From: Euprymna scolopes
Lineage: Eukaryota
Assembly: GCA_053919585.1 (NCBI GenBank)
Contig: CM132793.1
Strand: one strand, 5' to 3'
Length of the DNA: 64,000 bases
Part shown: positions 29,549 through 64,000 of the stretch, in pieces
Position numbering within the stretch: position 1 is the stretch's first letter
Layout of the letters: every line of letters begins with the position of its first letter
The notes under the pieces: model-generated
Databases searched by the model: none
What the model was told of the DNA's origin: nothing
What the model saw: only the letters and a program-made list of their open reading frames with translations
Position numbers and translations under genes: made by a program

Positions 29549-30080
29549 NNNNNNNNNNNNNNNNNNNNNNNNNNNNNNNNNNNNNNNNNNNNNNNNNNNN
29601 NNNNNNNNNNNNNNNNNNNNNNNNNNNNNNNNNNNNNNNNNNNNNNNNNNNNNNNNNNNNNNNNNNNNNNNNNNNNNNNNNNNNNNNNNNNNNNNNNNNN
29701 NNNNNNNNNNNNNNNNNNNNNNNNNNNNNNNNNNNNNNNNNNNNNNNNNNNNNNNNNNNNNNNNNNNNNNNNNNNNNNNNNNNNNNNNNNNNNNNNNNNN
29801 NNNNNNNNNNNNNNNNNNNNNNNNNNNNNNNNNNNNNNNNNNNNNNNNNNNNNNNNNNNNNNNNNNNNNNNNNNNNNNNNNNNNNNNNNNNNNNNNNNNN
29901 NNNNNNNNNNNNNNNNNNNNNNNNNNNNNNNNNNNNNNNNNNNNNNNNNNNNNNNNNNNNNNNNNNNNNNNNNNNNNNNNNNNNNNNNNNNNNNNNNNNN
30001 NNNNNNNNNNNNNNNNNNNNNNNNNNNNNNNNNNNNNNNNNNNNNNNNNNNNNNNNNNNNNNNNNNNNNNNNNNNNNNNN
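29549..30080. other. Assembly gap
   Basis: Run of N. Confidence 1.
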
Positions 30081-30201
30081 NTAATACTGGGCGCAATGCC
30101 ATTATTCATCATTAGCGTATTTTTCTTTTCTCTCTCTCCCTCCCTATATATATATTTATACGTATTGTTTTGAACTTTTTACTGAAGAAATAAATATATG
30201 T

Positions 30202-46080: not shown

Positions 46081-46217
46081 TCAACTGCCCAAAGCTGGAG
46101 CAGCAGGGACAGGCAGTATGACAGGGATGTGATAGTACTTGCACAGTTGACGGCGGCATTTTCCTTTGACTGAATCACGGCACACAGTCACCTTGCCATC
46201 CGTCACTTCAACATACT
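46081..46217 (-). CDS. mbl: Muscleblind last coding exon, CCCH zinc finger (E)YVEVTDGKVTVCRDSVKGKCRRQLCKYYHIPVILPVPAAPALGS*
   Basis: Acceptor TTATTTTTTTCAG, phase 1, matching the upstream exon. C-x7-C-x4-C-x3-H with the muscleblind VTVCRD leader. TGA at 46081-46083. Confidence 0.92.
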
Positions 46218-46747
46218 CTGAAAAAAATAAATAAATCATAGAAATTTAAAGCAAAAAACAAGATAATTCGCCCTAATTTATTTCTATTTGTATCAAAGGT
46301 TAAAAACTCAAAACAAGAGTAAATAAAAAAAAATGCTAATGTTTTTAGGATCTTTTGACAAGAGTCGGATCATTTAACGTTGCACAGAAATCAAAATTAT
46401 CTCACAAACACTTCAAGTATGTAATTTGCCGAGTTAATCAATTAAAATTATGAGAACTTCATGCATAATTCTTGTGTCCCTATTTACTTAGCTGCTTACA
46501 AGGACAGAGTTAGATATATGATCAGTTTATAAGGTGGGGAAAATCCATCTCGCCAAAAAGTGAACTCTGGATTATGACAAAAATAAAAATTGTTTTAGTT
46601 TGGAAAGATTTCTCCTTCACTGATCAATGGCAAAAAAGATGAAGTATCGAATCAAAAGCTCCTGAAAAAATGTCCAAGGAAGAGCCATGTGTACTTCTTG
46701 TATAAACATAAAATTGATAATCAAATATTTATTGAAAAAAAAATGTA

Positions 46748-47430
46748 ATTTTTTTTTTTTTTTTTTTTTACATAGGCGTCACCACTTATCAAAGCCGATC
46801 GGCCATTCAAGGATAACGGTTAAAGAGTGTAGAGTAGTCAAAAGGACAATATAGTAATCAATAATAATGGAAGTTCGGTAAATTTGTTAACTTAAGTGGA
46901 ACGGCTCATCAGAAACTTGTTCACGTTGGACTTGAAGACAACCATATTATAGACAGCTGGAAAGCAGGAAAACGGAAGACAATTCCACAGGCGTGCAGTT
47001 CAAAGAAAGAAGCTTTGATCATGGAATCTATGTTTAGGTTTAGGCACAGATAAAGAGTGGGGGGAATTATTGATAGTGTTTTCAGCTAGTCTAGTGTTTC
47101 TTGTGAAAGTTTGGCGAGGGGGGACCATAGATTGAAGCTCAGTTGAACACTTTCCATGAAAATAACGATAAAGCAGAGACAAACTCGCAACATCTCTTCT
47201 GTGAGATAGAGGTTGCAGCAAAGAGAAAAGGACATCTCCCACCAGGCCACGAAGTCTATTTTGAACCCTATCAATGCAGGACAAGTCATTTCTAGCAGCT
47301 CCTGCCCATATGTGGCAACAGTATTCCATCCTTGGACGTATCTGGCTCTTATATAGATAGAGAATTGCATCAGCAGTGAGATATCTACTGGATCGATAGA
47401 AGGATCCGACCATTTTTCCAGCGGCCTGGC
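46748..47430 (-). mobile_element. 5'-truncated CR1/Jockey-group LINE in the intron between the two zinc-finger exons
   Basis: LYLYKSQIRPRMEYCCHIW..LQPLSHRRDVASLSLLYRYFHGKCS, with 3' UTR and poly-A (T-run 46748-46769 on +). Same family as 11605-12082. Confidence 0.88.
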
Positions 47431-47917
47431 ATAAAATAAAAACTTAAATCCCTCAGAATGCATTTCTGTTTTTTTAATTTAATTTAAATAAAGGAAGGGG
47501 GTGTTCATAGTTTATAAAAAATGAAAAAGCAAAACATAACTGAAATAAAAATAATACTAGCAGGTAAGTAGTACTAGTTAGTGGACATGTGTTATTTATA
47601 TTTTTGTCTCTCCAAATTACACAAATACCATTTTAAACATTTTAAAGCAAAGTTGATAGGTTAGTAATCATCAAATGTCTGAATAATAACATAAAATAGA
47701 AATATTCATTGGAAATTCTCATGCAATATGTAATAGAGAATAAGTAAGAACAAAGAATGTTAATTACAAAGTTTATTCTCAAGTAATTTTCATTTGAAAA
47801 TGCCTCATAAAAATTGCAATGCATGTAGTTATCATAGAACATATGATGGAATGCAAGCCCCCCCCCCATATCCTCTCTCAAATACAGTTTAAAAAAAAAA
47901 AAAAAAAAAACACTTAC

Positions 47918-48002
47918 CCTCCAACAAATGCACAAACTTGCATTGTGGCCTGTTACATTGGCTAGACTTAAAATCGCGGCACACTCGGAGGGTGTCCAGC
48001 AA
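47918..48002 (-). CDS. mbl: Muscleblind exon, CCCH zinc finger LLDTLRVCRDFKSSQCNRPQCKFVHLLE
   Basis: 85 nt. Polypyrimidine tract plus AAG acceptor, GTAAGT donor, phase 0 to 1. Joins 46217 in frame to form a tandem CCCH pair like the second pair of protostome Mbl. Confidence 0.92.
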
Positions 48003-49652
48003 CTTAAAAAGAAAAAGAAAAAATAATATTAAAATGATATATCATTGAAAAAGCAAGAACATTCACAAACTCAGTTCACCTTGCTTTAATAGTAAATAAT
48101 AAAATTTATTAAAATTACATATAAATTCAAATGTGTGGTACATAAGAATACATATGAACTGCTTCAATTTTAGGTCACATTAATTAAAAGTTTTAGAATT
48201 TGAAGCTAGAAAAATAAATATCAATTTAATTTCTATTTTTAAAACAAAAATAAAACCTGGTAAAAAACAAATAAGATCTTTGAAATAATATTTGCATTGT
48301 ATGTTTAATCACTGATTCATGTGTATCCAAGAATACTAAAGGATGCCAAAGTAGATGATAAAAATGAAGAGACTAATCTAGAATCTGTTGAATAAAGCGT
48401 CCACATGGAATCATGGCAGCATTGGTTACAATCAGTTCTTAATGATAATCATCTGGGGGTTGAATCCTTACTACAGGTGATAATAACTAAGAATAATATA
48501 AAAGTTGCCCAGATAAGGAGAGATATACCTCTGATTTGTATAGCAAACAGAAAGACTAATTTTGAATTTTGTCTTTATTTTTTCTAGTTTTTTTTTTTTT
48601 TTGACTGCTTACTCAAACTCATTTTTTTCTGATTAAACAATGTGGCCCAATAGGTCATGCTTTTTCTAGTATAAATACAAGCATTAATCTTCTTAAGAAA
48701 AAAGTTGACTACTTAATTTTTTTATTATTATTATTCTTAGAAAATGAATGTGGAATAGAAAAGACATAAACAAAACAAAATTGCCCAAGAAAGAATTTTA
48801 ACCAATTTTTTTTCCAAAACTAAAATTAACCTAACAAATAGCAGCTCTGAAATTGAAGAATTGATTATGTAAAAAAAAAATCAAAATTCTTTTCAAACAT
48901 GCAACAATCTGCTTATTATGCATATGCAAAAACAAAAAAAAGTTTGTTAAGTTGTTTAGACATGCTTCTCTATGTAAACATGAAATCCTTCACAAAATGA
49001 AGAGAGCAAAATCAATACAAAGCAAACGCATGGAAAAGTGGTAAAAAATTTTGAATTTTGATAGGCAAGATTCCATCAAATGACATTCTGCAAGAATTTT
49101 TATTCATTCAAACTTAAATGATATAAACACAAAATGAAATAAATATTCACAAACTTCTTTCGAGTCTACAAAATTAAGATTGCTTGAGTGAAATGAGGTT
49201 TTTCTTTAACCAGGAGTTCTCAATACAAAGCACGATTCTAAACACTGGTCTTTTTTCAAAATCGAGTACGGGTTCATTCTTTTACTTTTTACCATTCAAG
49301 ATTTCTGGAGAGAAATGAACGGAAGTCATTGTAAAGATTAAAAAGAAGGGTGTTTTATAGAAGACCAAAAATAACGAGATCATTTACAAATCAAATAAAC
49401 TAATCTAAAAACTAAAAACATAACTTAAAGATCCACATAGAAGACAAAAAAGATAAACATAAGAAATTGTTGCACACTTTATGGAACAAAGAAAGAAGTA
49501 TAAAACTAAAAATGATTGGAACTGGAAAGAATATTGGAAAAAAAATCAAAGTCTGTTTTAAGATTTGGATGCAACTACGAGGAACATAAAGCAAAATGTT
49601 GTAAACGATATGAACAGCAGGATTAATAAGACTGGAGATAGCACTCTACTAC

Positions 49653-49792
49653 CTGGTTGTTCTCATCAGAGTAATTAACACTAGCAGCATTAGTGGAAAG
49701 CGAGGAGGTGGTGGTGCTGGCAGTGGTGATGGTGGTGTTGTTGTTGGCATTGGCCATCAATGTAGGTTGGTTGGGATTGACGATCATCGGCA
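49653..49792 (-). CDS. mbl: Muscleblind linker exon xPMIVNPNQPTLMANANNNTTITTASTTTSSLSTNAASVNYSDENNQ (alternative internal acceptor at 49680)
   Basis: Acceptor CAACAG is the first AG after a 223-nt AG-free zone. Donor CAG|GTAGTA is phase 0 and joins LLDTL in frame. The acceptor choice is inferred. Confidence 0.7.
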
Positions 49793-49794
49793 CT

Positions 49795-50017
49795 GTTGGG
49801 TTTTTCATGGCAGTCAAAGAGGAAGAAGGGTCAGCGGTAGAGGTAGTAGTAGTAGGAGGTGACAGCAGCAGCAGCAGCAGCAGCAGCAGCCCGAAGTAAC
49901 AGCAGCAGGCGGTAACAGTGGTTTTTAAGTGCAGATGAAGCACAGGTTGCATGCAGAGTGGTACAATTTGTGCACAGGAGTGGGTCAAGGCATGAAAGAA
50001 GAGATGAATAGCAAATC
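49795..50017 (-). promoter_or_regulatory. AG-exclusion zone with YGCY cluster including (CTG)9; putative MBNL-binding splicing element
   Basis: No AG on the minus strand for 223 nt. About 16 YGCY motifs by hand count. Pyrimidine tract and CTTGAC branch-like motif near 49985-50010. Confidence 0.6.
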
Positions 50018-51399
50018 CTCATTTGTTTATTGCGATAAGCAAACATCCTGATTCTTTTTGGGATGAGGAGGGATATTGTTTTAATTCTGACCATTGTCTT
50101 CATCAATGTCGTAAAAGCGTTGATATCAATGTTGATGAAAACAATAATTGGAAGAAAAACAAAATCAAAAGAAAAAAAAAAAAATAATGTAAATAATCCA
50201 GATTCTTATAAAGCAACTCTGTAAAAATCTGCAATGATCTTTTTTTTGGCTGCTGCTGATTGATTTTGTACAAATCATAAATTTTTTTAAGTTTCTTTCA
50301 AGACAAAGTAGATTTTCGTTTTTAACACAAATTTTTTTTTTTTTTTCAAAATGGATTCAGTAACAAACAACCATCAATCGTATCAATTTCTCGCTAAAAA
50401 TAACTGCAATTTAAGTTTTCTAATTTGTTTAATTACTTTTGGAAAGAATGCTTATTTATTCCATCATGCATATTATTACTACTTCAAAAAGTATTAAAAA
50501 CTAAAGATTTTAAATTACTTAAATGAGGAGTGAGAGGATGTTTGTAAAATAACAAAAGAAAATAAAAATTCTTAAAGTTTTTGGAATTCAGAAACAACTA
50601 AGCAAGCCAAATAATGGTTTTTCTTTTAAATATTAAACTCAACATATAATTAGAAAAATATTTATCTGAATAATTAGAGAAAATGAATACAGTCATTAAT
50701 AAACAGCCGTCGATCATATCAATTTCTAGCTAAAAATATTGCATCATAAGTATTTAGTTGCTCGAATGGATGTAGAAAGAGATTTTAATCCCAAAAGTTG
50801 AATGGATTTTGTTATGGCAATTAAAAAGGCAAAGCAAAAATGGTAAAAAAGCTTATCAGAAAAAAAAACATTTATCAGTCAATAAAGCAATGGAAGCAAT
50901 TAAACCTTGTAAGATCTTAAAAAAGACATGTAATTATTACTTTCACTATGTCTTTGACCTCAACATCCCAAGGTTATAGTGTGAATGTAAAATTATCAAT
51001 GATATAAAAATTAAGGTACAGCTTCTTTTCAAATAATAAAGCCATAAAGATTAGCAGGATGTTGAAGCAACTAAAAAGTTGGTTACAATATTTCTGGAAT
51101 CATTTAAGCAACTTTCCAAATGCTAATAAAGCAATAGAAAGGTAAGGAAAAATAGGTGGGAAAAAAGCCAGTTTTTGATAATTGCTTTCCAGAAAGTTTT
51201 AAGTTTCCTTCAATGGAAACATTGTAGTTAAAACTAAGAAAAAACTGACCTCAATGTCAAAGAGAAACGTAAACCAAATAAGAACATAAGTCGCAAGACT
51301 GCATACCTCTGCTTGACAATATAAGAATGAGCCAAAGTTGTATTTGGGTCTTCTCCATATTGCATGAGATATTCTGACGATGAAAATGTTGATAATTAA

Positions 51400-51765
51400 A
51401 AAATATTTATCTGCCTAGGTTGAAATTTTGCATGACGGTTACTGTTATTAAAGAGCATCTGATCCACACATCAAATTTGGAAAAATCACAAATAGTAATC
51501 CTTTCAAAACTTTGACCTCAACTGAAATTTCATGGTTATAGTTACAGACTTCATTGGATACAATATGGGTCAAGTAGTGAGTCACTATGATGAACAGCCT
51601 CAAAACTGATTTTCATCTTGTCTTTGACATCTCCAAATTTAATCAGTTCTAAATTAGAAAATAACAGATATTTTGACCAAATTTGGTGAAAACAAGTCCA
51701 GCATTATGAATCATACACTGTGCACAAAAAGACACAATCTAAAACTTCACCTTGGCAGAGGGAAG
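51400..51765. mobile_element. Possible decayed Helentron-associated (HINE-like) element
   Basis: Ends AAAACTTCACCTTGGCAGAGG, resembling HINE termini, with internal CCAAATTT/TTGACC motifs. Weak. Confidence 0.3.
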
Positions 51766-53785
51766 CATATGACACAAGAGTAAAATGAAACAGTATAACA
51801 GCATTTATTGTAGTCTTTTGTTATAAATTTCAATAAATAAAATCATATCAGATTTATTATTTCAACATGTTCTATCATTTTTAAAGATAGTTAATTAATG
51901 GTTACTTTTTTGTTCTTGAAATGAATATCATTTAATAGATTTAATTTGTAGACATAATAGTTAAACAATTGTGAGGAGAACAATTTAACAAATTTTACAG
52001 TGTTGAGAATGTGACATTTTCGGATTAAATCTGAAAGAAAGAAACAGCTTCGAATAGAATGACGTATATGTTGGCTAAAATTGAAATTAGAAAAAGGATT
52101 TGTTTAAATGCAGCGATTGTGACATGCTATTAAATGAAGTGTTTATCCATTCAACAAAATGTATTAGAAACTTAAAAATAAAAATAAACAATAACCAAAG
52201 AATTAAGCTTTCAAATGAGTTCAATGAAATAAAATGGCTGGGTTCAGGTTAATTTTCACTTCTTGGGCATAGCATACATATAAAATATTTTTTCAAGTTT
52301 ACAGAACAGTTGTAAGAAAATGTAAAGTACACAATCCTTGAAATTAATCATGAATTACCGATATAAAAGCAGTTGTACTTTTCTAAATATAAAAGAAAGT
52401 TTAATACAATCTGAATGTGAACGCATCTACAATCGCTAAAAACGGGTCTACTTTTTCAAGCTACAAATCGGGGGAGGGGGGGGCATCATATTTTTGCCCA
52501 TTGGATACATGTATGGTATTATAAAATGCCACACACTTTAAAATAAATTCAGCTTTATAAAGTAATAAAACAAAATCTTTAATGTCCACAGCATGGTTGC
52601 AATTATTTAGAAAATAATAATAAAAAAACATATTCTTCATATTGGAATACATACAATTTGACGATTAATTCCTAAATTTGTAAAATCAACATTATTAATT
52701 TGAAACTATCACATTGGCATCAAATGTTTTTCTCAAAATGTGACAAAAATCATTCTTTGAAATGAAATGTCTTTCGGTTACAGCAAAACTTACAAAAATT
52801 GAGTCATATTCCTATTTCTTTGCATCCCAAATTAAAAAACAAAAAGAATTGATTTATATCTTTATGGCTGATTGTAATTCTAAGATAGTTACATGAAATC
52901 AAGACAGGAGAAATAATATAAACGAGATTTCAATTAAAAAGTTAGCGATAGAAAAGATGTATAAATGATTTTCATTTATGAATTCCTTGTTGATATGGCA
53001 CAAAGTTCAATCTTGCCAAAAACGTAAGTGAACATCGAGCAATACTATTGACATGCAAATGTGTGATTATAGACATGGATGGGAAGACACATCGAAAAGC
53101 AGGCAAAGACGCTGACTAGTTTTCCCCTTGCAATAAAAGTAAATCGCCATTAAGCAGGAGATTAAAACTAAATATTTCTATAAGAAATGGTTAAATCATA
53201 GCAAAATGCATTCTCGATTAAAATAAGAATAATGCAAAGTGAAAGGCATTTTAAAAATGAGTATTTTTAAACAAATCATTTCAGCTTTGAAAGTGAAAGA
53301 TATACGTATTGGTTTTAAAGTTCGAGCAAGGAAATTAAAGTACTCCAATTGAGGCAAACACACTGTCTGCTATTTTCAAAACAGTATTACAAAATTGAAA
53401 AATGCAAATATGTCTTTGCCAATCAAGTAAAAAAGAGAATGTTTGATTTGCAAGTTAAACGGACACAGTAACAATCACATACTTTATCAATTTGGTGATA
53501 AATAAAAAGAGAACACTTGATTGCTCAATTCCCATAAAATAAGACTTTTATTTCAGAAGTATTCATTTTTATTTGAATTTTTAAAAATATATACCTAAAA
53601 AAAGTATTTGAATAGCAAGACAATCAAGTTGAGTTGCTGTAAATAATGGCTATTTGTTATTTTCATTTTTAATATGGAAACAATTAGCTGATTATAAAGA
53701 GAGAGTTGTGAAATAGATTGCAAAAGTGGTGCAAACAAAGGAGCGGTTATGATAGCAGCATTGGAAGGTGCGCCACACCACTTAC

Positions 53786-53817
53786 AGAGCAGCGAGATAC
53801 AGACGATAGCGCCAGCG
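53786..53817 (-). CDS. mbl: Candidate 32-nt muscleblind microexon (S)AGAIVCISLL
   Basis: TTGCATTGCAG acceptor, GTAAGT donor, phase 2 to 1. It restores the frame of the 118-nt exon and is preceded by YGCY-rich sequence. Confidence 0.55.
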
Positions 53818-53971
53818 CTGCAATGCAACACAAGCGGCAGGGAAGCAGCAGCAGACGATGACGATGGGCAAAGTCGTGCAAGTTGTTGCACAAGTTCTAT
53901 CGAATAGATTTAATCTGACAAACTGGTAGATTTTTAAACAAAACTTTGCAAAGACTGCTAACATAAAGCAA

Positions 53972-54125
53972 NNNNNNNNNNNNNNNNNNNNNNNNNNNNN
54001 NNNNNNNNNNNNNNNNNNNNNNNNNNNNNNNNNNNNNNNNNNNNNNNNNNNNNNNNNNNNNNNNNNNNNNNNNNNNNNNNNNNNNNNNNNNNNNNNNNNN
54101 NNNNNNNNNNNNNNNNNNNNNNNNN
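53972..54125. other. Assembly gap
   Basis: Run of N. Confidence 1.
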
Positions 54126-55596
54126 ATTTGTAGATAAACCTTGTTGCAATTGCAAACTGCTAACTGATTTCATTTGAAAATCACCTTCAGCAGTCATTAG
54201 CATTAGTGAAACTGATTGCTCAATATTAATATTGGATTCAGAAATCAAATAGAAAAATGATATTAAAGAATTAAATGGAAAGACTATCTTGTTAAAAGGA
54301 CAGGTTTCAGATGTAACAGGTAGTTCTTGCCAAGAAAACTAGAGGTCACACAATTCAACAAAGCTACAGCTTTCCATATTTAACCTCAAATAACAAAAAA
54401 GATTTAGAAAAAAATCATGCTTATAAACTATAAAGTTAAAACAAAAATAATAATTAAAAGAAGTTTAGTAATTTGCAAAAGATTTCTACAAATATCAAAT
54501 ATGAACCTCAAAAACTCAGTTTGAAATATATCAAATGTCCAATTTTATGATATAAAAAAGAAATTAAGAGTAGACATGATTTCATGCTGTGATTAGCAAC
54601 TTTGCGTGGAATTTATTTATAAAATTTTTGCTTTTAAATTAAATATTGTCATAAATACAAATATTTATGAACAGATGATGAAATCAATTACACTAAAATA
54701 AATTAAAATGGAAAAGATAAATATACAAATTATTTTGAAAAAAAGAATTAATATTAACAATATGATCTGACTCTATAAAATAGAAAATTAATTTTAAATA
54801 TTAGGATCCTTGGATGCTTTGTTTTTTGATTAACACATTTTTAAAATGCACTAAACAATAGTAATAATACTAGTAGCAGTTAAAGATTCTAACCAGTCCA
54901 TTAAGAAATTCTGAACACTCAAAGCAAATTGAAAAATGGTAGGATAACCAGGCTACACTGCATGTTAGGCAACAGACAACACAAGCAGTTGAGATCAGGT
55001 TTTTTTTTTTGTGTGTGTGTGTTTTTTTTTTGGGGGGGGGGGTCTTTTTTTAATTGCAAAAAAAAAAAATCAAGTTGTTTTTTGATTTTTTTTTGTTTAT
55101 TAAAACTTTGTTAATATTGATTTTGGTTATTTTAATAAAAAAAAATAATTTTTGAAGCAGTGGCAGGTGTGAATCTGCTTGGATGGAGGTCAAGGTAAAT
55201 AAAAAGTTAAAAATATAAAAGAAAATATCTAACGATCAAAATTATTTTATTATCATAAAGTAAGGAAATAGGAGAAATTAGGAATAGGAGGAAAGCTGTA
55301 GCAATGCAGAAAAATACTGAGAGCATTGTGTGAGCCGAAGCTGGGTAGTAGGCGGGGACAAACAAGTTTCACCTGCCACGACCACCAAGACGACCAACAA
55401 CAACAGCAGCAAGGGCAGCCTCCACCACCAGCAGCAGCAGCACCATTGCCCCCCTCAAACATCAGGGAGGCACTGTGTTTGTGCATGTGTTTTTATGGTG
55501 GGTGCCACCCATCGCCACTGCCGCCTGCTGCCAACTGCCATCGTCGCTGCCACCGCCGCCGCCATGGCCGATATGCCTGCCTCACTGTCTGCTCAC

Positions 55597-55714
55597 GACT
55601 GGGAGTTATGCTGAAGACTGTCCGATTGGAGGACTAGCCAACTTGGCAGATGTGATGGAGGTAATGGAGTCAGATGAGGAGGCCCTGCACCATATTCCAG
55701 GCTGTTAGATATAC
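55597..55714 (-). CDS. mbl: Candidate 118-nt muscleblind exon (C)ISNSLEYGAGPPHLTPLPPSHLPSWLVLQSDSLQHNSQ(S)
   Basis: Strong acceptor TTTTCCTCATCCTCTTCACTGCAG and GTGAGC donor. Open in phase 1. If the donor is skipped, it ends immediately in TGA (55593-55595). Confidence 0.6.
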
Positions 55715-58700
55715 CTGCAGTGAAGAGGATGAGGAAAACATAATGATGACGACGACAACCACCATCACATGACATTTTCAAGAGAGGCTTTCTTTCGCAG
55801 ATTCCAAAATGCCGTTGTCATAATTTTTTTTAAATTTAAAAAAAAAAAAAACAATAACTACAAGTGGACACTTCATATTTCAAAGACACTTAGGAGCACC
55901 AAGAAGAAATGAGTTAAGAGTTTAGATATTTTATAAAAATTATCTAAAAGAAATATGAAAACCTAATCTACATTTATGCAATGAAATCTAAAATAAGATT
56001 ATTCCACAAGTTTTTAAACAGCAGTAAAGAATATTTTTGCTATGATATCAAAACAGCAGCAGCTAAGAATCCATTTAAAACTGTTCAGAAAGAGAAAATA
56101 AATCTTGGATAAAAATGATCTTTTTTATGGTTTATTTTCCAAAATTTAGAAACAACAAGTGAATCCTATTAAAATTGTGCAAATCAAAACAGGATTCATC
56201 TTTCTATAATTCCAGCAACTACCTCGTAATGGATAAGTGCTGAATATTAAAAAAAAAAAACTACATACACTCTTTAGGTACCTGAGAAGTGCTGCATAAT
56301 CTCTGGAGTTGTTTTTAGTTTTAAAATTGAATTTTTAAAACAGCCTATTATATATGGCTATAATCTTGAAAATACTAGAGATTTCAACATGGTAGATTTA
56401 ATATATTTTTGTAATAGTGTATACTAAATTTGTATTCTTTAGTCATTTATCAAAAGCAAAATAATATTTTGAAGACATTCTTGATAATATTTTTGATAGT
56501 AGTTTTAAAAAATTTGTTATAATTTTGGTATTTTGGTATTTTGTTTATTTCCGTTTTTGATAGTTTATAAGTAACAGCTGGTTAACATCTGGTCAAGTGA
56601 AGTTTAAAGATATCTTTTGAGATGCAAAAATAAATCAAGCAAATGTTTTATTTTTCTGATTTCATTTCATAAATGATTATCTTTTATTCAACAGTTAAGC
56701 TATTTTACAAAAATTGCTTTCAGTTTTGTTAAATTTATATTGTATACTTTGATATATTTCTGCAATCTTACTAAAACTTATTCTTAGTTTATTAAAGCTA
56801 TAAGTTAATCAATGTAATCTTTGTATTTTTACAATAGTACAATGTTATAGAAAATGTTCTTTCAAAGATTAAATTTTCAGTTTTTTATTGTATAAAATAT
56901 GACTTGAACAATTATTAAAAACAATCTAAAATGTTAAACATTGCATTTGTGAAATTATAAAGAAATTTTTTCATGTAATCTTACTAGTATTTATACATGC
57001 ACAATGCATATCTTTAAAACACCCAAAAACACAAACTACAAGAATCTTTTTTATTGAAGGGAATTTAAAAAAAGAGAACAGAACTGATCACCAAATTAAA
57101 AATGTCAATTTTGCAATTGTACATCTTTCTAAAAGCTCAATTTTTCAAAATAAAAAAAAGAAAACTGATGGAGTGGGGATATAAAACAAAGATACTCTGG
57201 AAGAAAATTCAAATATTTAAATCCAACCATTTTTTTCCTCTCTATATACTTAATAGAATTTCAGAAAATACAGGAAAATAGTAATATACAATAAAATCTT
57301 ATAGAAATTAGCCTAAATTCAAGGAAATCATTTTTTGTTTTAAAATACATAGACTGATGTGAAATAGAATTGGCACACTTTAGTCAAGATGAAATGTACA
57401 GTTGTGTAATGCAGTTACAGATGCTCATTCCATATACTGACCAATATATGCAAAGTTATTAAAATAAGAGCTGAACAGCTAAATAGAAAATAGTAAGGTC
57501 AACTTAGGATTGTAACATCGTAAGCCAAAGTAGTTGTGAAACACCTTTGCAAAGCTTGTTGACGAGCATAAGAGACAAGAAATTCTGCTAGAATGACAAA
57601 CTATAGTTGCATACTATTCGAGACTAAGAAAATGGGTGGGATGTAAGAATACTCCCAAGAGATACTTTTTACTAGATCTACATCTTTTGCTCTCATCTAG
57701 AGATAACAATCATTTGCATAAAGGAAATATTAACCAATCACTGAATAGCATCATTCTGAATGCACTAAGTGACCTTATATTTATACCAGTAGAGACATGC
57801 ATGATACTGTATCAAAATGCACATATGGCCATAGCCAATGTGTAAATTGACAATTCAAGAAAATCTACATTGGCACTTATGAAGGTCTAATTTGCACTTT
57901 TACTTTTTTCATGCTACAGTTGCACTTAGAATGCACCAATCTTGGTTCAATAAAATTTTGTCAATGATCATAGAAATTTTCATTTAATGAATATTGGCAG
58001 CAACAATGTCTCAAGCATGTTATCTGCAACAATTCTATATAGAAAATCATGAAAACTGAATAAAAGGTTAAAAGTGACAACAGCTATATGGTGGACACAT
58101 TTTATTATGCCAAACCATAGTGTAGCTATTCTGTAAAAGTGGACAACTATGAATGTCTATTAAATGCCATCAAAGTTAACAAAATATTGTCAGTCTTATA
58201 GTCCTATCTGCTCTAATGAAAAAGTCCTTTCAGTGTGATGTAATCATATTCTTAATCAGTGTATTAGTAAACTGTTGATGTTAAAAAGATTAATACGAAT
58301 AAAGCAAAAATAAACAAAACAAAAAAAATATTGTCTTTGCCTGAATGTTGTTAACAAAAGAATCTTACATGAAAACTATTGAATCAGTTTGAAAAAAAAA
58401 TTGTTATACAAAAACAAAAAAAATCAATATTACAAATAAAACATCTTTCAAATTCTTTGGATTAGAATTCAAAATTGGGCAAATAAGTAATCCAACAAGA
58501 AAATGTTTTAGAAAACAAACTGATAGAATAACGGGTTAAAGTGACAGACAATTTAAAATTGGCAAAAAGATTATGAAACCAATAAAGTGCTGCCACCTTG
58601 AATTTGAAACAATAAATATCAAAGATTCTTTGGTTATGGAAGCAACAGTGTAGAGGAGTTAAAATATGCAGAAAATACAAACTTTGCAGTAGTTTCACAA

Positions 58701-58751
58701 AAGTGCAAACATGAACATTTAATAAAAAGATTTGAATGTAGTAGTACTCAC

Positions 58752-58793
58752 AAGTAAAATAAGGTTGAATTTCATTTAATTTTGTTGAAGAAT
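58752..58793 (-). CDS. mbl: 42-nt microexon copy B, xSSTKLNEIQPYFT
   Basis: CTTTCCAG acceptor, GTGAGT donor, phase 1-1. Paralog of 63055-63096. Assignment to mbl rests on strand, position and phase. Confidence 0.75.
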
Positions 58794-59059
58794 CTGGAAA
58801 GTAGAATAGAAAATGTGATCAATATAGTTAAATTGTTAAAAACATTTTTAACAACATTGAAATAACTATTGTAACTTTTGAAATAAATATAAATAACTGA
58901 AAGTAACTTGTTTATACATAGTTCCTCATATAATATGCACATATACTATTATTATTATTATTATTATATAAAGAACTATTAATAAAATTTTTATGCTAAT
59001 AATTATGAAAAAATCTATTCATAAAAATAATTCAAAATTCACAAAAACAGTTGTGAAAA

Positions 59060-62000
59060 CCATCCATTGTATGGCTATCCATTCAGGAAACTATCTATTG
59101 GATAGCCGTCGACTTGCAAAAGCCATCCATTATATGGCCATCTATTCTCAAAAGCCATCCATTGTACAGCAATCTATAACAACACACCACTGTATGGTCA
59201 TCTATTCATGACAAACATCCATTGTATGGACATCTATTCTCCAAAGTCATCTATTGTATGGATGTCTAATCTACAAAGCCATTCTTTGTATGGTCATCTA
59301 TTTGTGAAAACCATTCATTGTATAACCATCTATTCACTATAAACATCGATTATATGGCTGTCTTATCGAAAGCCATCCATTGTATGGTCGTATATTGTCC
59401 AATGTCATCCATTATATGGGTATATATTTGCAATAACCATCCATTGTATGGCCATTAATTTGCTATGACCATCCATCGTATGACCGTCTATTCATGATAA
59501 CCATCCATTGTATAACTATCTCTTTGTGGTAACCATCCATTTTATGACCGTCTCTTTGTGGTAACCATCTATTATATGACCGTCTCTTTGTGGTAACCAT
59601 CCATTATATGACCGTCTCTTTGTGGTAACCATCCATTATATGACCGTCTCTTTGTGGTAACCATCCATTATATGACCGTCTCTTTGTGGTAACAATCCAT
59701 TATATGACCGTCTCTTTGTGGTAACCATCCATTATATGACCGTCTCTTTGTGGTAACCATCCATTATATGACCGTCTCTTTGTGGTAACCATCCATTATA
59801 TGACCGTCTCTTTGTGGTAACCATCCATTATATGACCGTCTCTTTGTGGTAACCATCCATTATATGACCGTCTCTTTGTGGTAACCATCCATTATATGAC
59901 CGTCTCTTTGTGGTAACCATCCATTATATGACCGTCTCTTTGTGGTAACCATCCATTATATGACCGTCTCTTTGTGGTAACCATCCATTATATGACCGTC
60001 TCTTTGTGGTAACCATCCATTATATGACCGTCTCTTTGTGGTAACCATCCATTATATGACCGTCTCTATGTGGTAACCATCCATTATATGGCCGTCTCTT
60101 TGTGGTAATCATCCATTATATGACCGTCTCTTTGTGGTAACCATCCATTATATGACCGTCTCTTTGTGGTAACCATCCATTATATGACCGTCTCTTTGTG
60201 GTAACCATCCATTATATGACCGTCTCTTTGTGGTAACCATCCATTATATGACCGTCTCTTTGTGGTAACCATCCATTATATGACCGTCTCTTTGTGGTAA
60301 CCATCCATTATATGACCGTCTCTTTGTGGTAACCATCCATTATATGACCGTCTCTTTGTGGTAACCATCCATTATATGACCGTCTCTTTGTGGTAACCAT
60401 CCATTATATGACCGTCTCTTTGTGGTAACCATCCATTATATGACCGTCTCTATGTGGTAACCATCCATTATATGGCCGTCTCTTTGTGGTAACCATCCAT
60501 TATATGACGTCTCTTTGTGGTAACCATCCATTATATGACCGTCTCTTTGTGGTAACCATCCATTATATGACCGTCTCTTTGTGGTAACCATCCATTATAT
60601 GACCGTCTCTTTGTGGTAACCATCCATTATATGACCGTCTCTTTGTGGTAACCATCCATTATATGACCGTCTCTTTGTGGTAACCCATCCATTATATGAC
60701 GTCTCTTTGTGGTAACCATCTATTATATGACCGTCTCTTTGTGGTAACCATCCATTATATGACCGTCTCTTTGTGGTAACCATCCATTATATGACCGTCT
60801 CTTTGTGGTAACCATCCATTATATGACCGTCTCTTTGTGGTAACCATCCATTATATGGCCGTCTCTTTGTGGTAATCATCCATTATATGGCCGTCTCTTT
60901 GTGGTAACCATCCATTATATGACCGTCTCTTTGTGGTAACCATCCATTATATGACCGTCTCTTTGGGATAACCGTCCATTGTATGACCGTCTCTTTGGGA
61001 TAACCATCCATTGTATGACTGTCTCTTTGTGGTAACCATCCATGGTATAACCGTCTCTTTGTGGTAACCATCCATTATATGACCGTCTCTTTGTGGTAAC
61101 CATTCATTATATGACCGTCTCTTTGTGGTAACCATCCATTATATGACCGTCTCTTTGTGGTAACCATCCATTATATGACCGTCTCTTTGTGATAACAATC
61201 CATTGTATAACTGTCTCTTTGTGGTAACCATCCATTGTATGATTGTCTATTCATGTTAACCATTCATTGTATGACCGTCTCTTCATGGTAACCATCCATT
61301 GTATGACCGTCTACTCATGATAACCATCCATTGTATAACTATCTCTTTGTGGTAACCATCTATTATATGACCATCTCTTTGTCGTAACCATCCATTGTAT
61401 GACCATCTATTTGTGATAACCATTCATTGTATAACTGTCTCTTTGTGGTAACCATCCATTATATGACCATCTCTTTGCGGTAACCATCCATTGTATGACC
61501 GTCTATTCATGATAACCATCCATTGTATAACTGTCTCTTTGTGGTAACCATCCATTATATGACCATCTCTTTGTGGTAACCATCCATTGTATGATTGTCT
61601 ATTCATGATAACCATCCAAGGTATGACCGTCACTTCATGGTAACCATTCATTGTATGCCTATTTTTGATAACCATCCATTGTATGACCGTCTATTCATGA
61701 TAACCACCCATTGTATGACCATCTCTTTGTGGTAACGATCCATTGTATGACCGTCTCTTCATGGTAACCATCTATTATATGACCAACTCTTCAGTGGTAA
61801 CCATTCATTATATGACCATCTCTTTGAGGTAACCATCCATTATATAACTGTCTAATTGTGATAACCATCCATTGTATGGCTGTCTATTCTCCTAAGCCAT
61901 CCATTCTCTATGGCTGTTTATCTGCAACAATGATTGGTTGTATGGCTGTCTATTTGTAACACCCATCCATTGTATGATCATCTATTCTTGAAGCCATCTA

Positions 62001-62420
62001 TTGTATGGCGATTGATACACTATAACCATCCAATGTATGACTGTCTATTTGTGATAACTGTCCATTGTATGATTGTCTATTGCTGATAGTCATCCATTTT
62101 ATGGCAATCTATATACAACAATCATCCATTCTATGGCCATCTATTCACGACAACCATCTACTGTATGACTCTTCGCTATAACTATCCATTGTGGGACTGT
62201 CTATCCTTGAAAGCCATCCATTTTATGGTCATCTATTCATCAACACTCTTCTATTTTATGACTATGTACTCGCGCTAACCATACATTTTATGTTAGCCTA
62301 TTCACAACCATCCATAATATAGTCATCTGTTCACAACAACCATCCATTGTATCATGATCTATTCGTGATAACCATTCATTATATGATTATCTATTAGCGA
62401 TAATCATCCACTATATTGAG
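59060..62420. repeat. 32-bp minisatellite CCATCCATTATATGACCGTCTCTTTGTGGTAA, about 100 copies
   Basis: Near-identical core at about 59530-61180 with progressively diverged units on both flanks. Confidence 0.98.
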
Positions 62421-63054
62421 ACGTATTCAAGAAAATATCAAAATATCATTGTCATAGTGATATTTATTATTAAAAACGTCTAAAACGTTTTGTAGCCTAT
62501 TCAGAAAAATCATTACAATGAAATATATCTTTATTAATGATTTTAAGTTTGCATAAACACTTGTTTATAAAAATATAGGGTTATATGAACAGTTATTGAA
62601 AAGGCAAGAAATTTATATTTTTTGTAGGCAATTTTCTAATAATGTTTAAGCAAAATAGAAAGTGAAATAGCAGCTTCAATAAAAGCTGGAAAAGTTTTCA
62701 AACTTTAAATGAAAATATGAAAATATCTTTTAAATTATGGCTAATTGCAATTTTACAATCAAACCAACAATCTATTTCCAGGTTATAAAAGAAAATTTAA
62801 CAACTAATGCAGTACATAAATATAAGTATGAGTTCTCTTTAGATTTTAAATAACTTTAATGCAAATAATATAAACACAACTCAATAGAAGAAAAACAAAT
62901 GGAATATGTAAATTAATAATAAAGAATTTATAACTAAAATAACTTCATAAGAATATTATAAAATACAATTTCTTTTAATTCAGAAGTAAATTTTTTATTG
63001 GAAAATGTTTTAATGCTAAAATTAATGAAGATAAGTAAATAAGAAAATACTTAC

Positions 63055-63096
63055 AAGTAAAATAGGGTTGAATTTCATTCAATTTCGTGGATGAAT
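63055..63096 (-). CDS. mbl: 42-nt microexon copy A, xSSTKLNEIQPYFT
   Basis: TGCATTTACAG acceptor, GTAAGT donor, phase 1-1. Five differences from copy B, all synonymous. Confidence 0.75.
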
Positions 63097-63823: not shown

Positions 63824-64000
63824 CTGAACATGATCAGAATATGAATGACATCAGTAATCTGAACAAGATCAGAATATGAATGTCATCAGTAATCTGAACA
63901 AGATCAGAATATGAATGTCATCAGTAATCTGAACAAGATCAGAATATGAATGCCATTAGTAATCTGAACAAGATCAGAATATGAATGCCATCAGTAATCT
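63824..64000. repeat. 35-bp tandem repeat CTGAACAAGATCAGAATATGAATGYCATCAGTAAT, running off the window end
   Basis: Period 35 (63824, 63859, 63894...). Confidence 0.95.

Follow-up and report, generated by a model that had tools for sequence, protein, structure and literature searches.

A probable third tandem CCCH finger pair in the alternatively spliced 3' part of a muscleblind gene of Euprymna scolopes

MBNL proteins bind YGCY motifs and regulate their own exons. The canonical second zinc-finger (ZnF) pair of muscleblind (Mbl) proteins, ZnF3/4, is contained in one exon, with intron positions conserved from insects to vertebrates, and Drosophila produces in addition an isoform, MblF, whose second finger pair is poorly conserved and 32% identical to the vertebrate second pair (Irion 2012, PMC3315501). 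Isoforms with six CCCH fingers are already annotated in many RefSeq genomes; full-text literature searches retrieved no paper on a third finger pair of Muscleblind or on cephalopod muscleblind. The present analysis concerns a stretch of 64,000 nucleotides (nt) of Euprymna scolopes DNA (assembly GCA_053919585.1, contig CM132793.1; C11:99200001-99264000), taken from a genome of 5.9 Gb and referred to as the window, in which position 1 is the first letter. The region described here is most probably the alternatively spliced 3' part of a single cephalopod mbl gene, the last two exons of which encode a third tandem CCCH pair (fingers 5/6, TZF3).

A preliminary description of this DNA, made from the letters alone, had proposed seven small minus-strand exons joining into one open frame that ends in a tandem CCCH pair. 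All seven segments were present with the proposed lengths, phases and AG/GT borders, the chain closed in frame, and the letters of the two CCCH motifs matched exactly. Searches were run with one exon at a time, and database proteins (P0008 and others) served wherever a contiguous two-finger sequence was needed. Transcript support came from five public contigs, namely L022, L024, L025 and L026 of the species itself (approximately 100% identity; four runs, two accession series) and L023 of a related species (83-100% identity per exon). The segments are, in order of transcription:

63055-63096, minus strand: 42-nt cassette microexon A, phase 1-1, peptide SSTKLNEIQPYFT, AG/GTAAGT borders, present in L022-L026
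58752-58793, minus strand: 42-nt cassette microexon B, phase 1-1, AG/GTGAGT borders, present in L022-L026
55597-55714, minus strand: putative 118-nt exon, phase 1-2, GTGAGC donor, from homology to Octopus proteins
53786-53817, minus strand: 32-nt candidate exon, phase 2-1, CAG/GTAAGT borders
49653-49792, minus strand: putative 140-nt cassette exon (2 mod 3), phase 1-0, CAG/GTAGTA borders, from homology
47918-48002, minus strand: 85-nt exon encoding finger 5 (LLDTLRVCRDFKSSQCNRPQCKFVHLLE), phase 0-1, AAG/GTAAGT borders, present in transcripts
46081-46217, minus strand: coding part (137 nt) of the last exon, encoding finger 6, the tail and the TGA, phase 1-stop, present in transcripts

Every one of these segments is open in its phase, and the codons split at the junctions (Y, C, S, L and E) include no stop. 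Microexons A and B are duplicates (88% nucleotide identity, identical peptide), and the peptide of microexon A was found in Octopus proteins as well. The two finger exons are separated by an intron of 1.7 kb (46218-47917). The last exon has a single strong copy genome-wide, and its 3' untranslated region (UTR) reaches at least 46003, extending to 45830 in contig L023 of the related species.

The gene was identified as muscleblind, as had been supposed, by several lines of evidence. The contigs join the window exons to canonical N-terminal Mbl exons (C11:99321590, 99291213 and 99281579), and the nearest named proteins were the muscleblind proteins of Argonauta hians, Octopus vulgaris and Octopus sinensis (87-90% identity). 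The expectation that the 5' exons lie beyond position 64000 was borne out too: a Pfam zf-CCCH_10 scan of the whole genome gave three further matches upstream on the same strand, which were the canonical Muscleblind exons, 14-58 kb upstream. By translation, they comprise:

Approximately C11:99321594-99321782, same strand as the window exons: start codon, ZnF1 and half of ZnF2
Approximately C11:99291213-99291392, same strand as the window exons: remainder of ZnF2 and linker
C11:99278231-99278443, same strand as the window exons: ZnF3/4 in one exon

The best matches of the finger exons in the PDB were likewise MBNL1 and MBNL2 (phmmer, E values of 1e-10 and 4e-8). The 85-nt exon matched best the tandem fingers of MBNL1 and gave a Pfam zf-CCCH_10 match with an E value of 3e-5; the last exon matched ZnF3/4 of MBNL2 and MBNL1 with E values down to 1e-10 and Pfam PF22628 with 44 bits, which is over the cut-off. 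In addition, an AlphaFold model built for the database protein P0008 with 19 relatives (pLDDT, the predicted local distance difference test, of 78) was used for a fold search with Foldseek. The top ten PDB matches were all tandem fingers of MBNL1/2, with template modelling (TM) scores of 0.62-0.79, and CPSF30 came next, far behind.

Within muscleblind, the pair had been taken for ZnF3/4, an assignment that was rejected in view of the canonical exon found upstream and the placement of the pair in the tree. When 1.84 billion representatives were searched with the last exon (phmmer), the top matches were proteins of 380-600 amino acids (aa) with six CCCH stretches, the best match lying C-terminally; named examples came from bivalves, gastropods, mosquitoes, a wasp, a locust, decapod crustaceans, a scorpion and amphioxus. 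The third position in these proteins has the signature LLDTLPVC[RQ]DF ... YVEV.DG.V.VCRD ... CKYYH[IL]P. In an alignment of 20 sequences (A1), the window pair kept all invariant columns, its sole departure being an R for the P in LLDTLP. Furthermore, in a tree of 61 finger pairs, 20 of them third-position, these 20 formed one side of a branch with support 100/92, the window pair among them as sister to the third pair of Octopus bimaculoides (support 98/89), and the ZnF3/4 exon found upstream (exon 4) grouped with the second pairs of molluscs. It is thus hardly credible that the window fingers are the canonical second pair. The last exon does score slightly higher against PDB entries of ZnF3/4 (43.8 bits) than against those of ZnF1/2 (39 bits), but the same gene carries upstream a ZnF3/4 exon that is 88% identical to octopus ZnF3/4. 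Moreover, whereas the first and second pairs carry CX7CX6CX3H in the first finger and canonical ZnF3/4 combine this with CX7CX4CX3H in the second, both window fingers are of the CX7CX4CX3H type. The window pair is also split by an intron, unlike the one-exon canonical second pair, and the tree places it apart from the ZnF3/4 group. Among the proteins examined here, members of the third-pair class were recognised only in invertebrates and amphioxus, and TZF3 is an old module of their Mbl proteins, C-terminal to ZnF1/2 and ZnF3/4.

The putative 140-nt and 118-nt exons are supported by homology, chiefly to the RefSeq model XP_052830666.1 (P0298) of O. bimaculoides, in which the two 42-nt microexons, the equivalents of the 118-nt and 140-nt exons and fingers 5/6 share one frame. 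The 140-nt exon aligns to this model with an in-frame indel of nine residues and ends in the conserved motif NAASVNYSDENNQ. Directly before LLDTLPVC, molluscs, insects, crustaceans, chelicerates and amphioxus have conserved NAxSVxY.D...Q, and the window sequence conforms to it. Similarly, the start of the 140-nt exon, when read after the 149-nt exon that lies upstream of the microexons, gives YIPVT-LPMIVNP, matching YIPVS-LPMVVAP of Ruditapes. The 118-nt exon matched O. sinensis isoform X12 with an E value of 1.8e-8 and 64% identity (tblastn); it was found in no decapodiform transcript on record. Its equivalent, with the ending QS*, closes 11 of the 12 O. sinensis isoforms on record, and in the window a TGA (55593-55595) overlaps the GTGAGC donor, so that this exon can act as a terminal coding exon ending in QS*. 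The model P0298 uses the equivalent as an internal exon with the same donor.

The transcripts on record have one 3' structure, shared by all five contigs: 67469-67617 (149 nt), 63055-63096, 58752-58793, 47918-48002, and the last exon from 46217 to 46003 or 45830. They prove the two 42-nt exons, used in tandem, and the 85-nt and 137-nt exons; the seven-exon chain in full is contained in no transcript on record. As the 118-, 32- and 140-nt exons are skipped, the fingers fall out of frame and the protein ends in FAGHPPSVPRF*. In this isoform the 85-nt exon is read one base off, and a TAA (47968-47970) ends translation 50 nt ahead of the last junction. The opening 35 nt of that exon (47968-48002) can be read in two ways, as LLDTLRVCRDFK in the finger frame and as FAGHPPSVPRF* in the skipping isoform, and both readings are conserved in Octopus. 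The ZnF3/4 exon (C11:99278231-99278443) was skipped in the five contigs as well, which means that the isoform on record for this species carries ZnF1/2 only. Further alternative coding exons were found between ZnF2 and the linker exon at C11:99285558-99285623 (MYEASGKPVAYPTVLPGQYPVL), approximately 99283300-99283450 (HQTSYMDKNWTL) and approximately 99289945-99289980 (VMTQAGLNYGK), and these are present in some contigs and Octopus isoforms. Neither the end of the 140-nt exon, written as a degenerate pattern, nor a 44-nt piece taken from the 85-nt exon was matched in scans of JGI metagenomes.

Conservation suggests that the third pair is translated. With respect to O. bimaculoides, the 85-nt exon had a protein identity of 89%, the 137-nt exon one of 86% and the ZnF3/4 exon, for comparison, one of 88%, and all eight zinc ligands were kept. 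With respect to the species of contig L023, the finger exons showed five differences over 222 nt (three synonymous and two non-synonymous, a count too small to prove selection), versus approximately 9% in the adjacent UTR. These comparisons argue for translation in the finger frame somewhere, and conservation at protein level relative to octopus, together with the in-frame Octopus RefSeq model, points to inclusion of the 140-nt exon in some cells, where a protein with fingers 5/6 would be made. Several observations weigh against this reading. The junctions on record differ from those of the preliminary description, as all five contigs splice 58752 straight to 48002 and omit the 118-, 32- and 140-nt exons. 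Seven recorded cephalopod proteins, Octopus models ending in FAGHPPTVPRF among them, share the out-of-frame ending, and neither the 140-nt exon nor the in-frame fingers occur in any transcript or transcript-derived protein of a decapodiform on record. A region search seeded with the TZF3 of a shrimp yielded no in-frame cephalopod protein of 244-777 aa, and the in-frame Octopus model P0298 is a partial computational one. Finally, in P0298 the 118-nt equivalent is followed immediately by the finger-leading exon in a phase-2 version, and the matching acceptor in the window, 8 nt upstream of 49792 and inside a zone free of AG, is AA and not AG; a direct join of the 118-nt exon to the 140-nt exon would consequently shift the frame and run into a stop inside the latter.

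The skipping of the 140-nt exon in every transcript contig and transcript-derived protein, the conservation of the out-of-frame tail in Octopus and the single partial model as the only in-frame cephalopod protein found would also fit exons that are relics, in which case cephalopods, or at least the decapodiforms among them, would no longer translate the third pair, the 140-nt exon would be dead, and the 85-nt and 137-nt exons would survive as the FAGHPPSVPRF* tail and 3' UTR. Such a loss seems unlikely, however, since the finger frame is intact and as well conserved between octopus and the window as that of the ZnF3/4 exon, the zinc ligands are kept and the substitutions are conservative, and the 140-nt exon has both ends conserved and differs by an indel whose length is a multiple of three; untranslated sequence would hardly hold such conservation over that divergence. 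Still less probable is a separate small gene or second cistron that makes the finger pair alone, in a protein some 80 aa long (such as the open reading frame (ORF) MKFNLILL-LLDTL... from an ATG in microexon B). ORF callers do give a protein of 81 aa on L022 (P0008), and O. bimaculoides, Lottia and Capitella have models of 69-81 aa that stand alone, but these look like fragments from annotation that missed the small linking exons, and full-length six-finger Mbl proteins of other phyla carry this pair at the C-terminus. The finger exons are, moreover, spliced to mbl exons in all five contigs, the 85-nt exon is without an ATG of its own, and the sole in-frame ATG, which overlaps the main ORF, comes approximately 800 nt after the main start codon.

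If the third pair of this mbl gene is indeed translated, the 140-nt cassette, with its length of 2 mod 3, probably acts as a frame switch deciding its translation. Where the cassette is included downstream of the 149-nt exon, whether or not the frame-neutral 42-nt microexons are present, the 85-nt and 137-nt exons would be read as fingers 5/6. Its omission places the 85-nt exon in another frame, with an end after 11 codons (FAGHPPSVPRF*) and the finger sequence as 3' UTR, and a third outcome would have the 118-nt exon as terminal coding exon (..QS*). An observation of a related kind concerns a hypothetical protein of the bivalve Sinanodonta woodiana (P0081), in which the third-pair exons are read out of frame for approximately 100 residues (NCWTPSQCAEIL...); this reading points either to the same frame switch or to a faulty annotation. 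Two features lie in the surrounding introns:

53972-54125, no strand: assembly gap (N), intronic, between the 118-nt and 32-nt segments
49793-50015, minus strand: 223-nt AG-free zone upstream of the 140-nt exon, with (CUG)9 and 16 YGCY

The 32-nt candidate exon would mend the frame shift of the 118-to-140 join. It is the best of three segments with decent splice sites among 131 frame-compatible AG..GT segments in the intron; it has no counterpart in the Octopus model P0298 and occurs in no transcript on record. The assembly gap, 155 nt upstream of its acceptor, interrupts no exon and alters no phase, and a further exon could be hidden inside. Over 21 kb of intron, YGCY motifs cluster in three places, namely the AG-free (CUG)9 tract upstream of the 140-nt exon, the surroundings of the 32-nt segment, which sits within this island, and the sequence downstream of the 118-nt exon. 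The 16 YGCY of the AG-free zone compare with a mean of 1.7 (standard deviation 2.5) in neighbouring intron windows of the same size; only 3 of 418 such windows reach 16, and all three overlap the AG-free zone itself. As MBNL proteins bind such motifs and act on their own exons, autoregulation of the switch is plausible. Tentatively, Mbl might bind the (CUG)9/YGCY tract, and maybe the other two islands, and repress inclusion of the 140-nt exon, with the 32-nt segment as a lineage-specific microexon replacing the octopus acceptor. In that event, a cell would set the share of its Mbl that carries the third pair, 'off' would be the default in the cephalopod tissues sampled, and the 32-nt microexon would keep the frame whenever the 118-nt exon is included. 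By analogy with the MBNL fingers, the third pair itself may bind GC-containing RNA.

The window contains some other elements. A tandem array of a 32-nt unit (59468-61885; approximately 76 copies, 91% matches), with degenerate flanks at 59056-59513 and 62306-62416, occupies much of the intron between microexons A and B. A satellite with a 35-nt unit (higher order of approximately 175 nt) starts at 63824, reaches the window end at 64000 and continues to about C11:99266414, over 2 kb into the adjoining intron stretch; contigs C35 and C2 carry weaker relatives. Inside the intron between the finger exons, overlapping minus-strand ORFs of 137 aa and 125 aa were found at 47000-47463. A Pfam scan of the 137-aa ORF (47000-47413) gave no match, and the sequence presumably resembles the tail of an ORF of a non-LTR (long terminal repeat) retroelement. 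A second assembly gap (29549-30081, 533 N) lies away from the exon chain.

The locus adds a cephalopod case to the little-discussed third tandem pair of many invertebrate and amphioxus Muscleblinds, with access to this pair proposed to be gated by a frame-shifting cassette exon, and it overturns nothing that is known about MBNL proteins. It also demonstrates the connection of the finger 5/6 exons to mbl, which matters for annotation because these exons are easily missed or called a separate small gene, as in O. bimaculoides, Lottia and Capitella. In a spider, such a fragment was named a toxin: residues 51-114 of a 120-aa protein of Liphistius (P0035; UniProt U64-Liphistoxin-Lsp1a_1) are a Muscleblind third pair, 75-80% identical to the window exons, and the name looks like a mislabel from a venom-gland transcriptome.

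Compared with known systems, the window pair shares the tandem CCCH fold of human MBNL1 ZnF3/4 and ZnF1/2 (3D2Q, 3D2S, 3D2N and 5U6H; TM scores of 0.7-0.79, root-mean-square deviation of 1.3-2.6 A, 40-47% identity), although in human MBNL1 the first finger of each pair is of the CX7CX6CX3H type and ZnF3/4 lie in one exon. Drosophila MblF, known here by its published description, arises as in the window from an alternative set of 3' exons of mbl, which supplies a finger pair other than the canonical second one, and it may belong to the same class as the window third pair. In O. bimaculoides (XP_052830666.1, P0298; A0A0L8GUY8, P0283), the exon order is as here, with ZnF3/4, the 72-nt and 149-nt exons, two SSTKLNE microexons, the 118-nt and 140-nt equivalents and fingers 5/6; with respect to P0298, the 140-nt exon here is nine residues longer and the tails after HIPVIL differ. 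In other invertebrates and amphioxus an in-frame six-finger isoform is annotated, whereas here only the out-of-frame skipping isoform is on record, and the window pair has R where the six-finger proteins have a near-invariant P in LLDTLP. The C-terminal pair of these six-finger Mbl proteins (Pinctada, P0004; Ruditapes, P0161; Centruroides, P0198; Anopheles funestus, P0240; Panulirus, P0266; Branchiostoma, P0275) nevertheless shares with the window pair its spacing, its signature and one clade.

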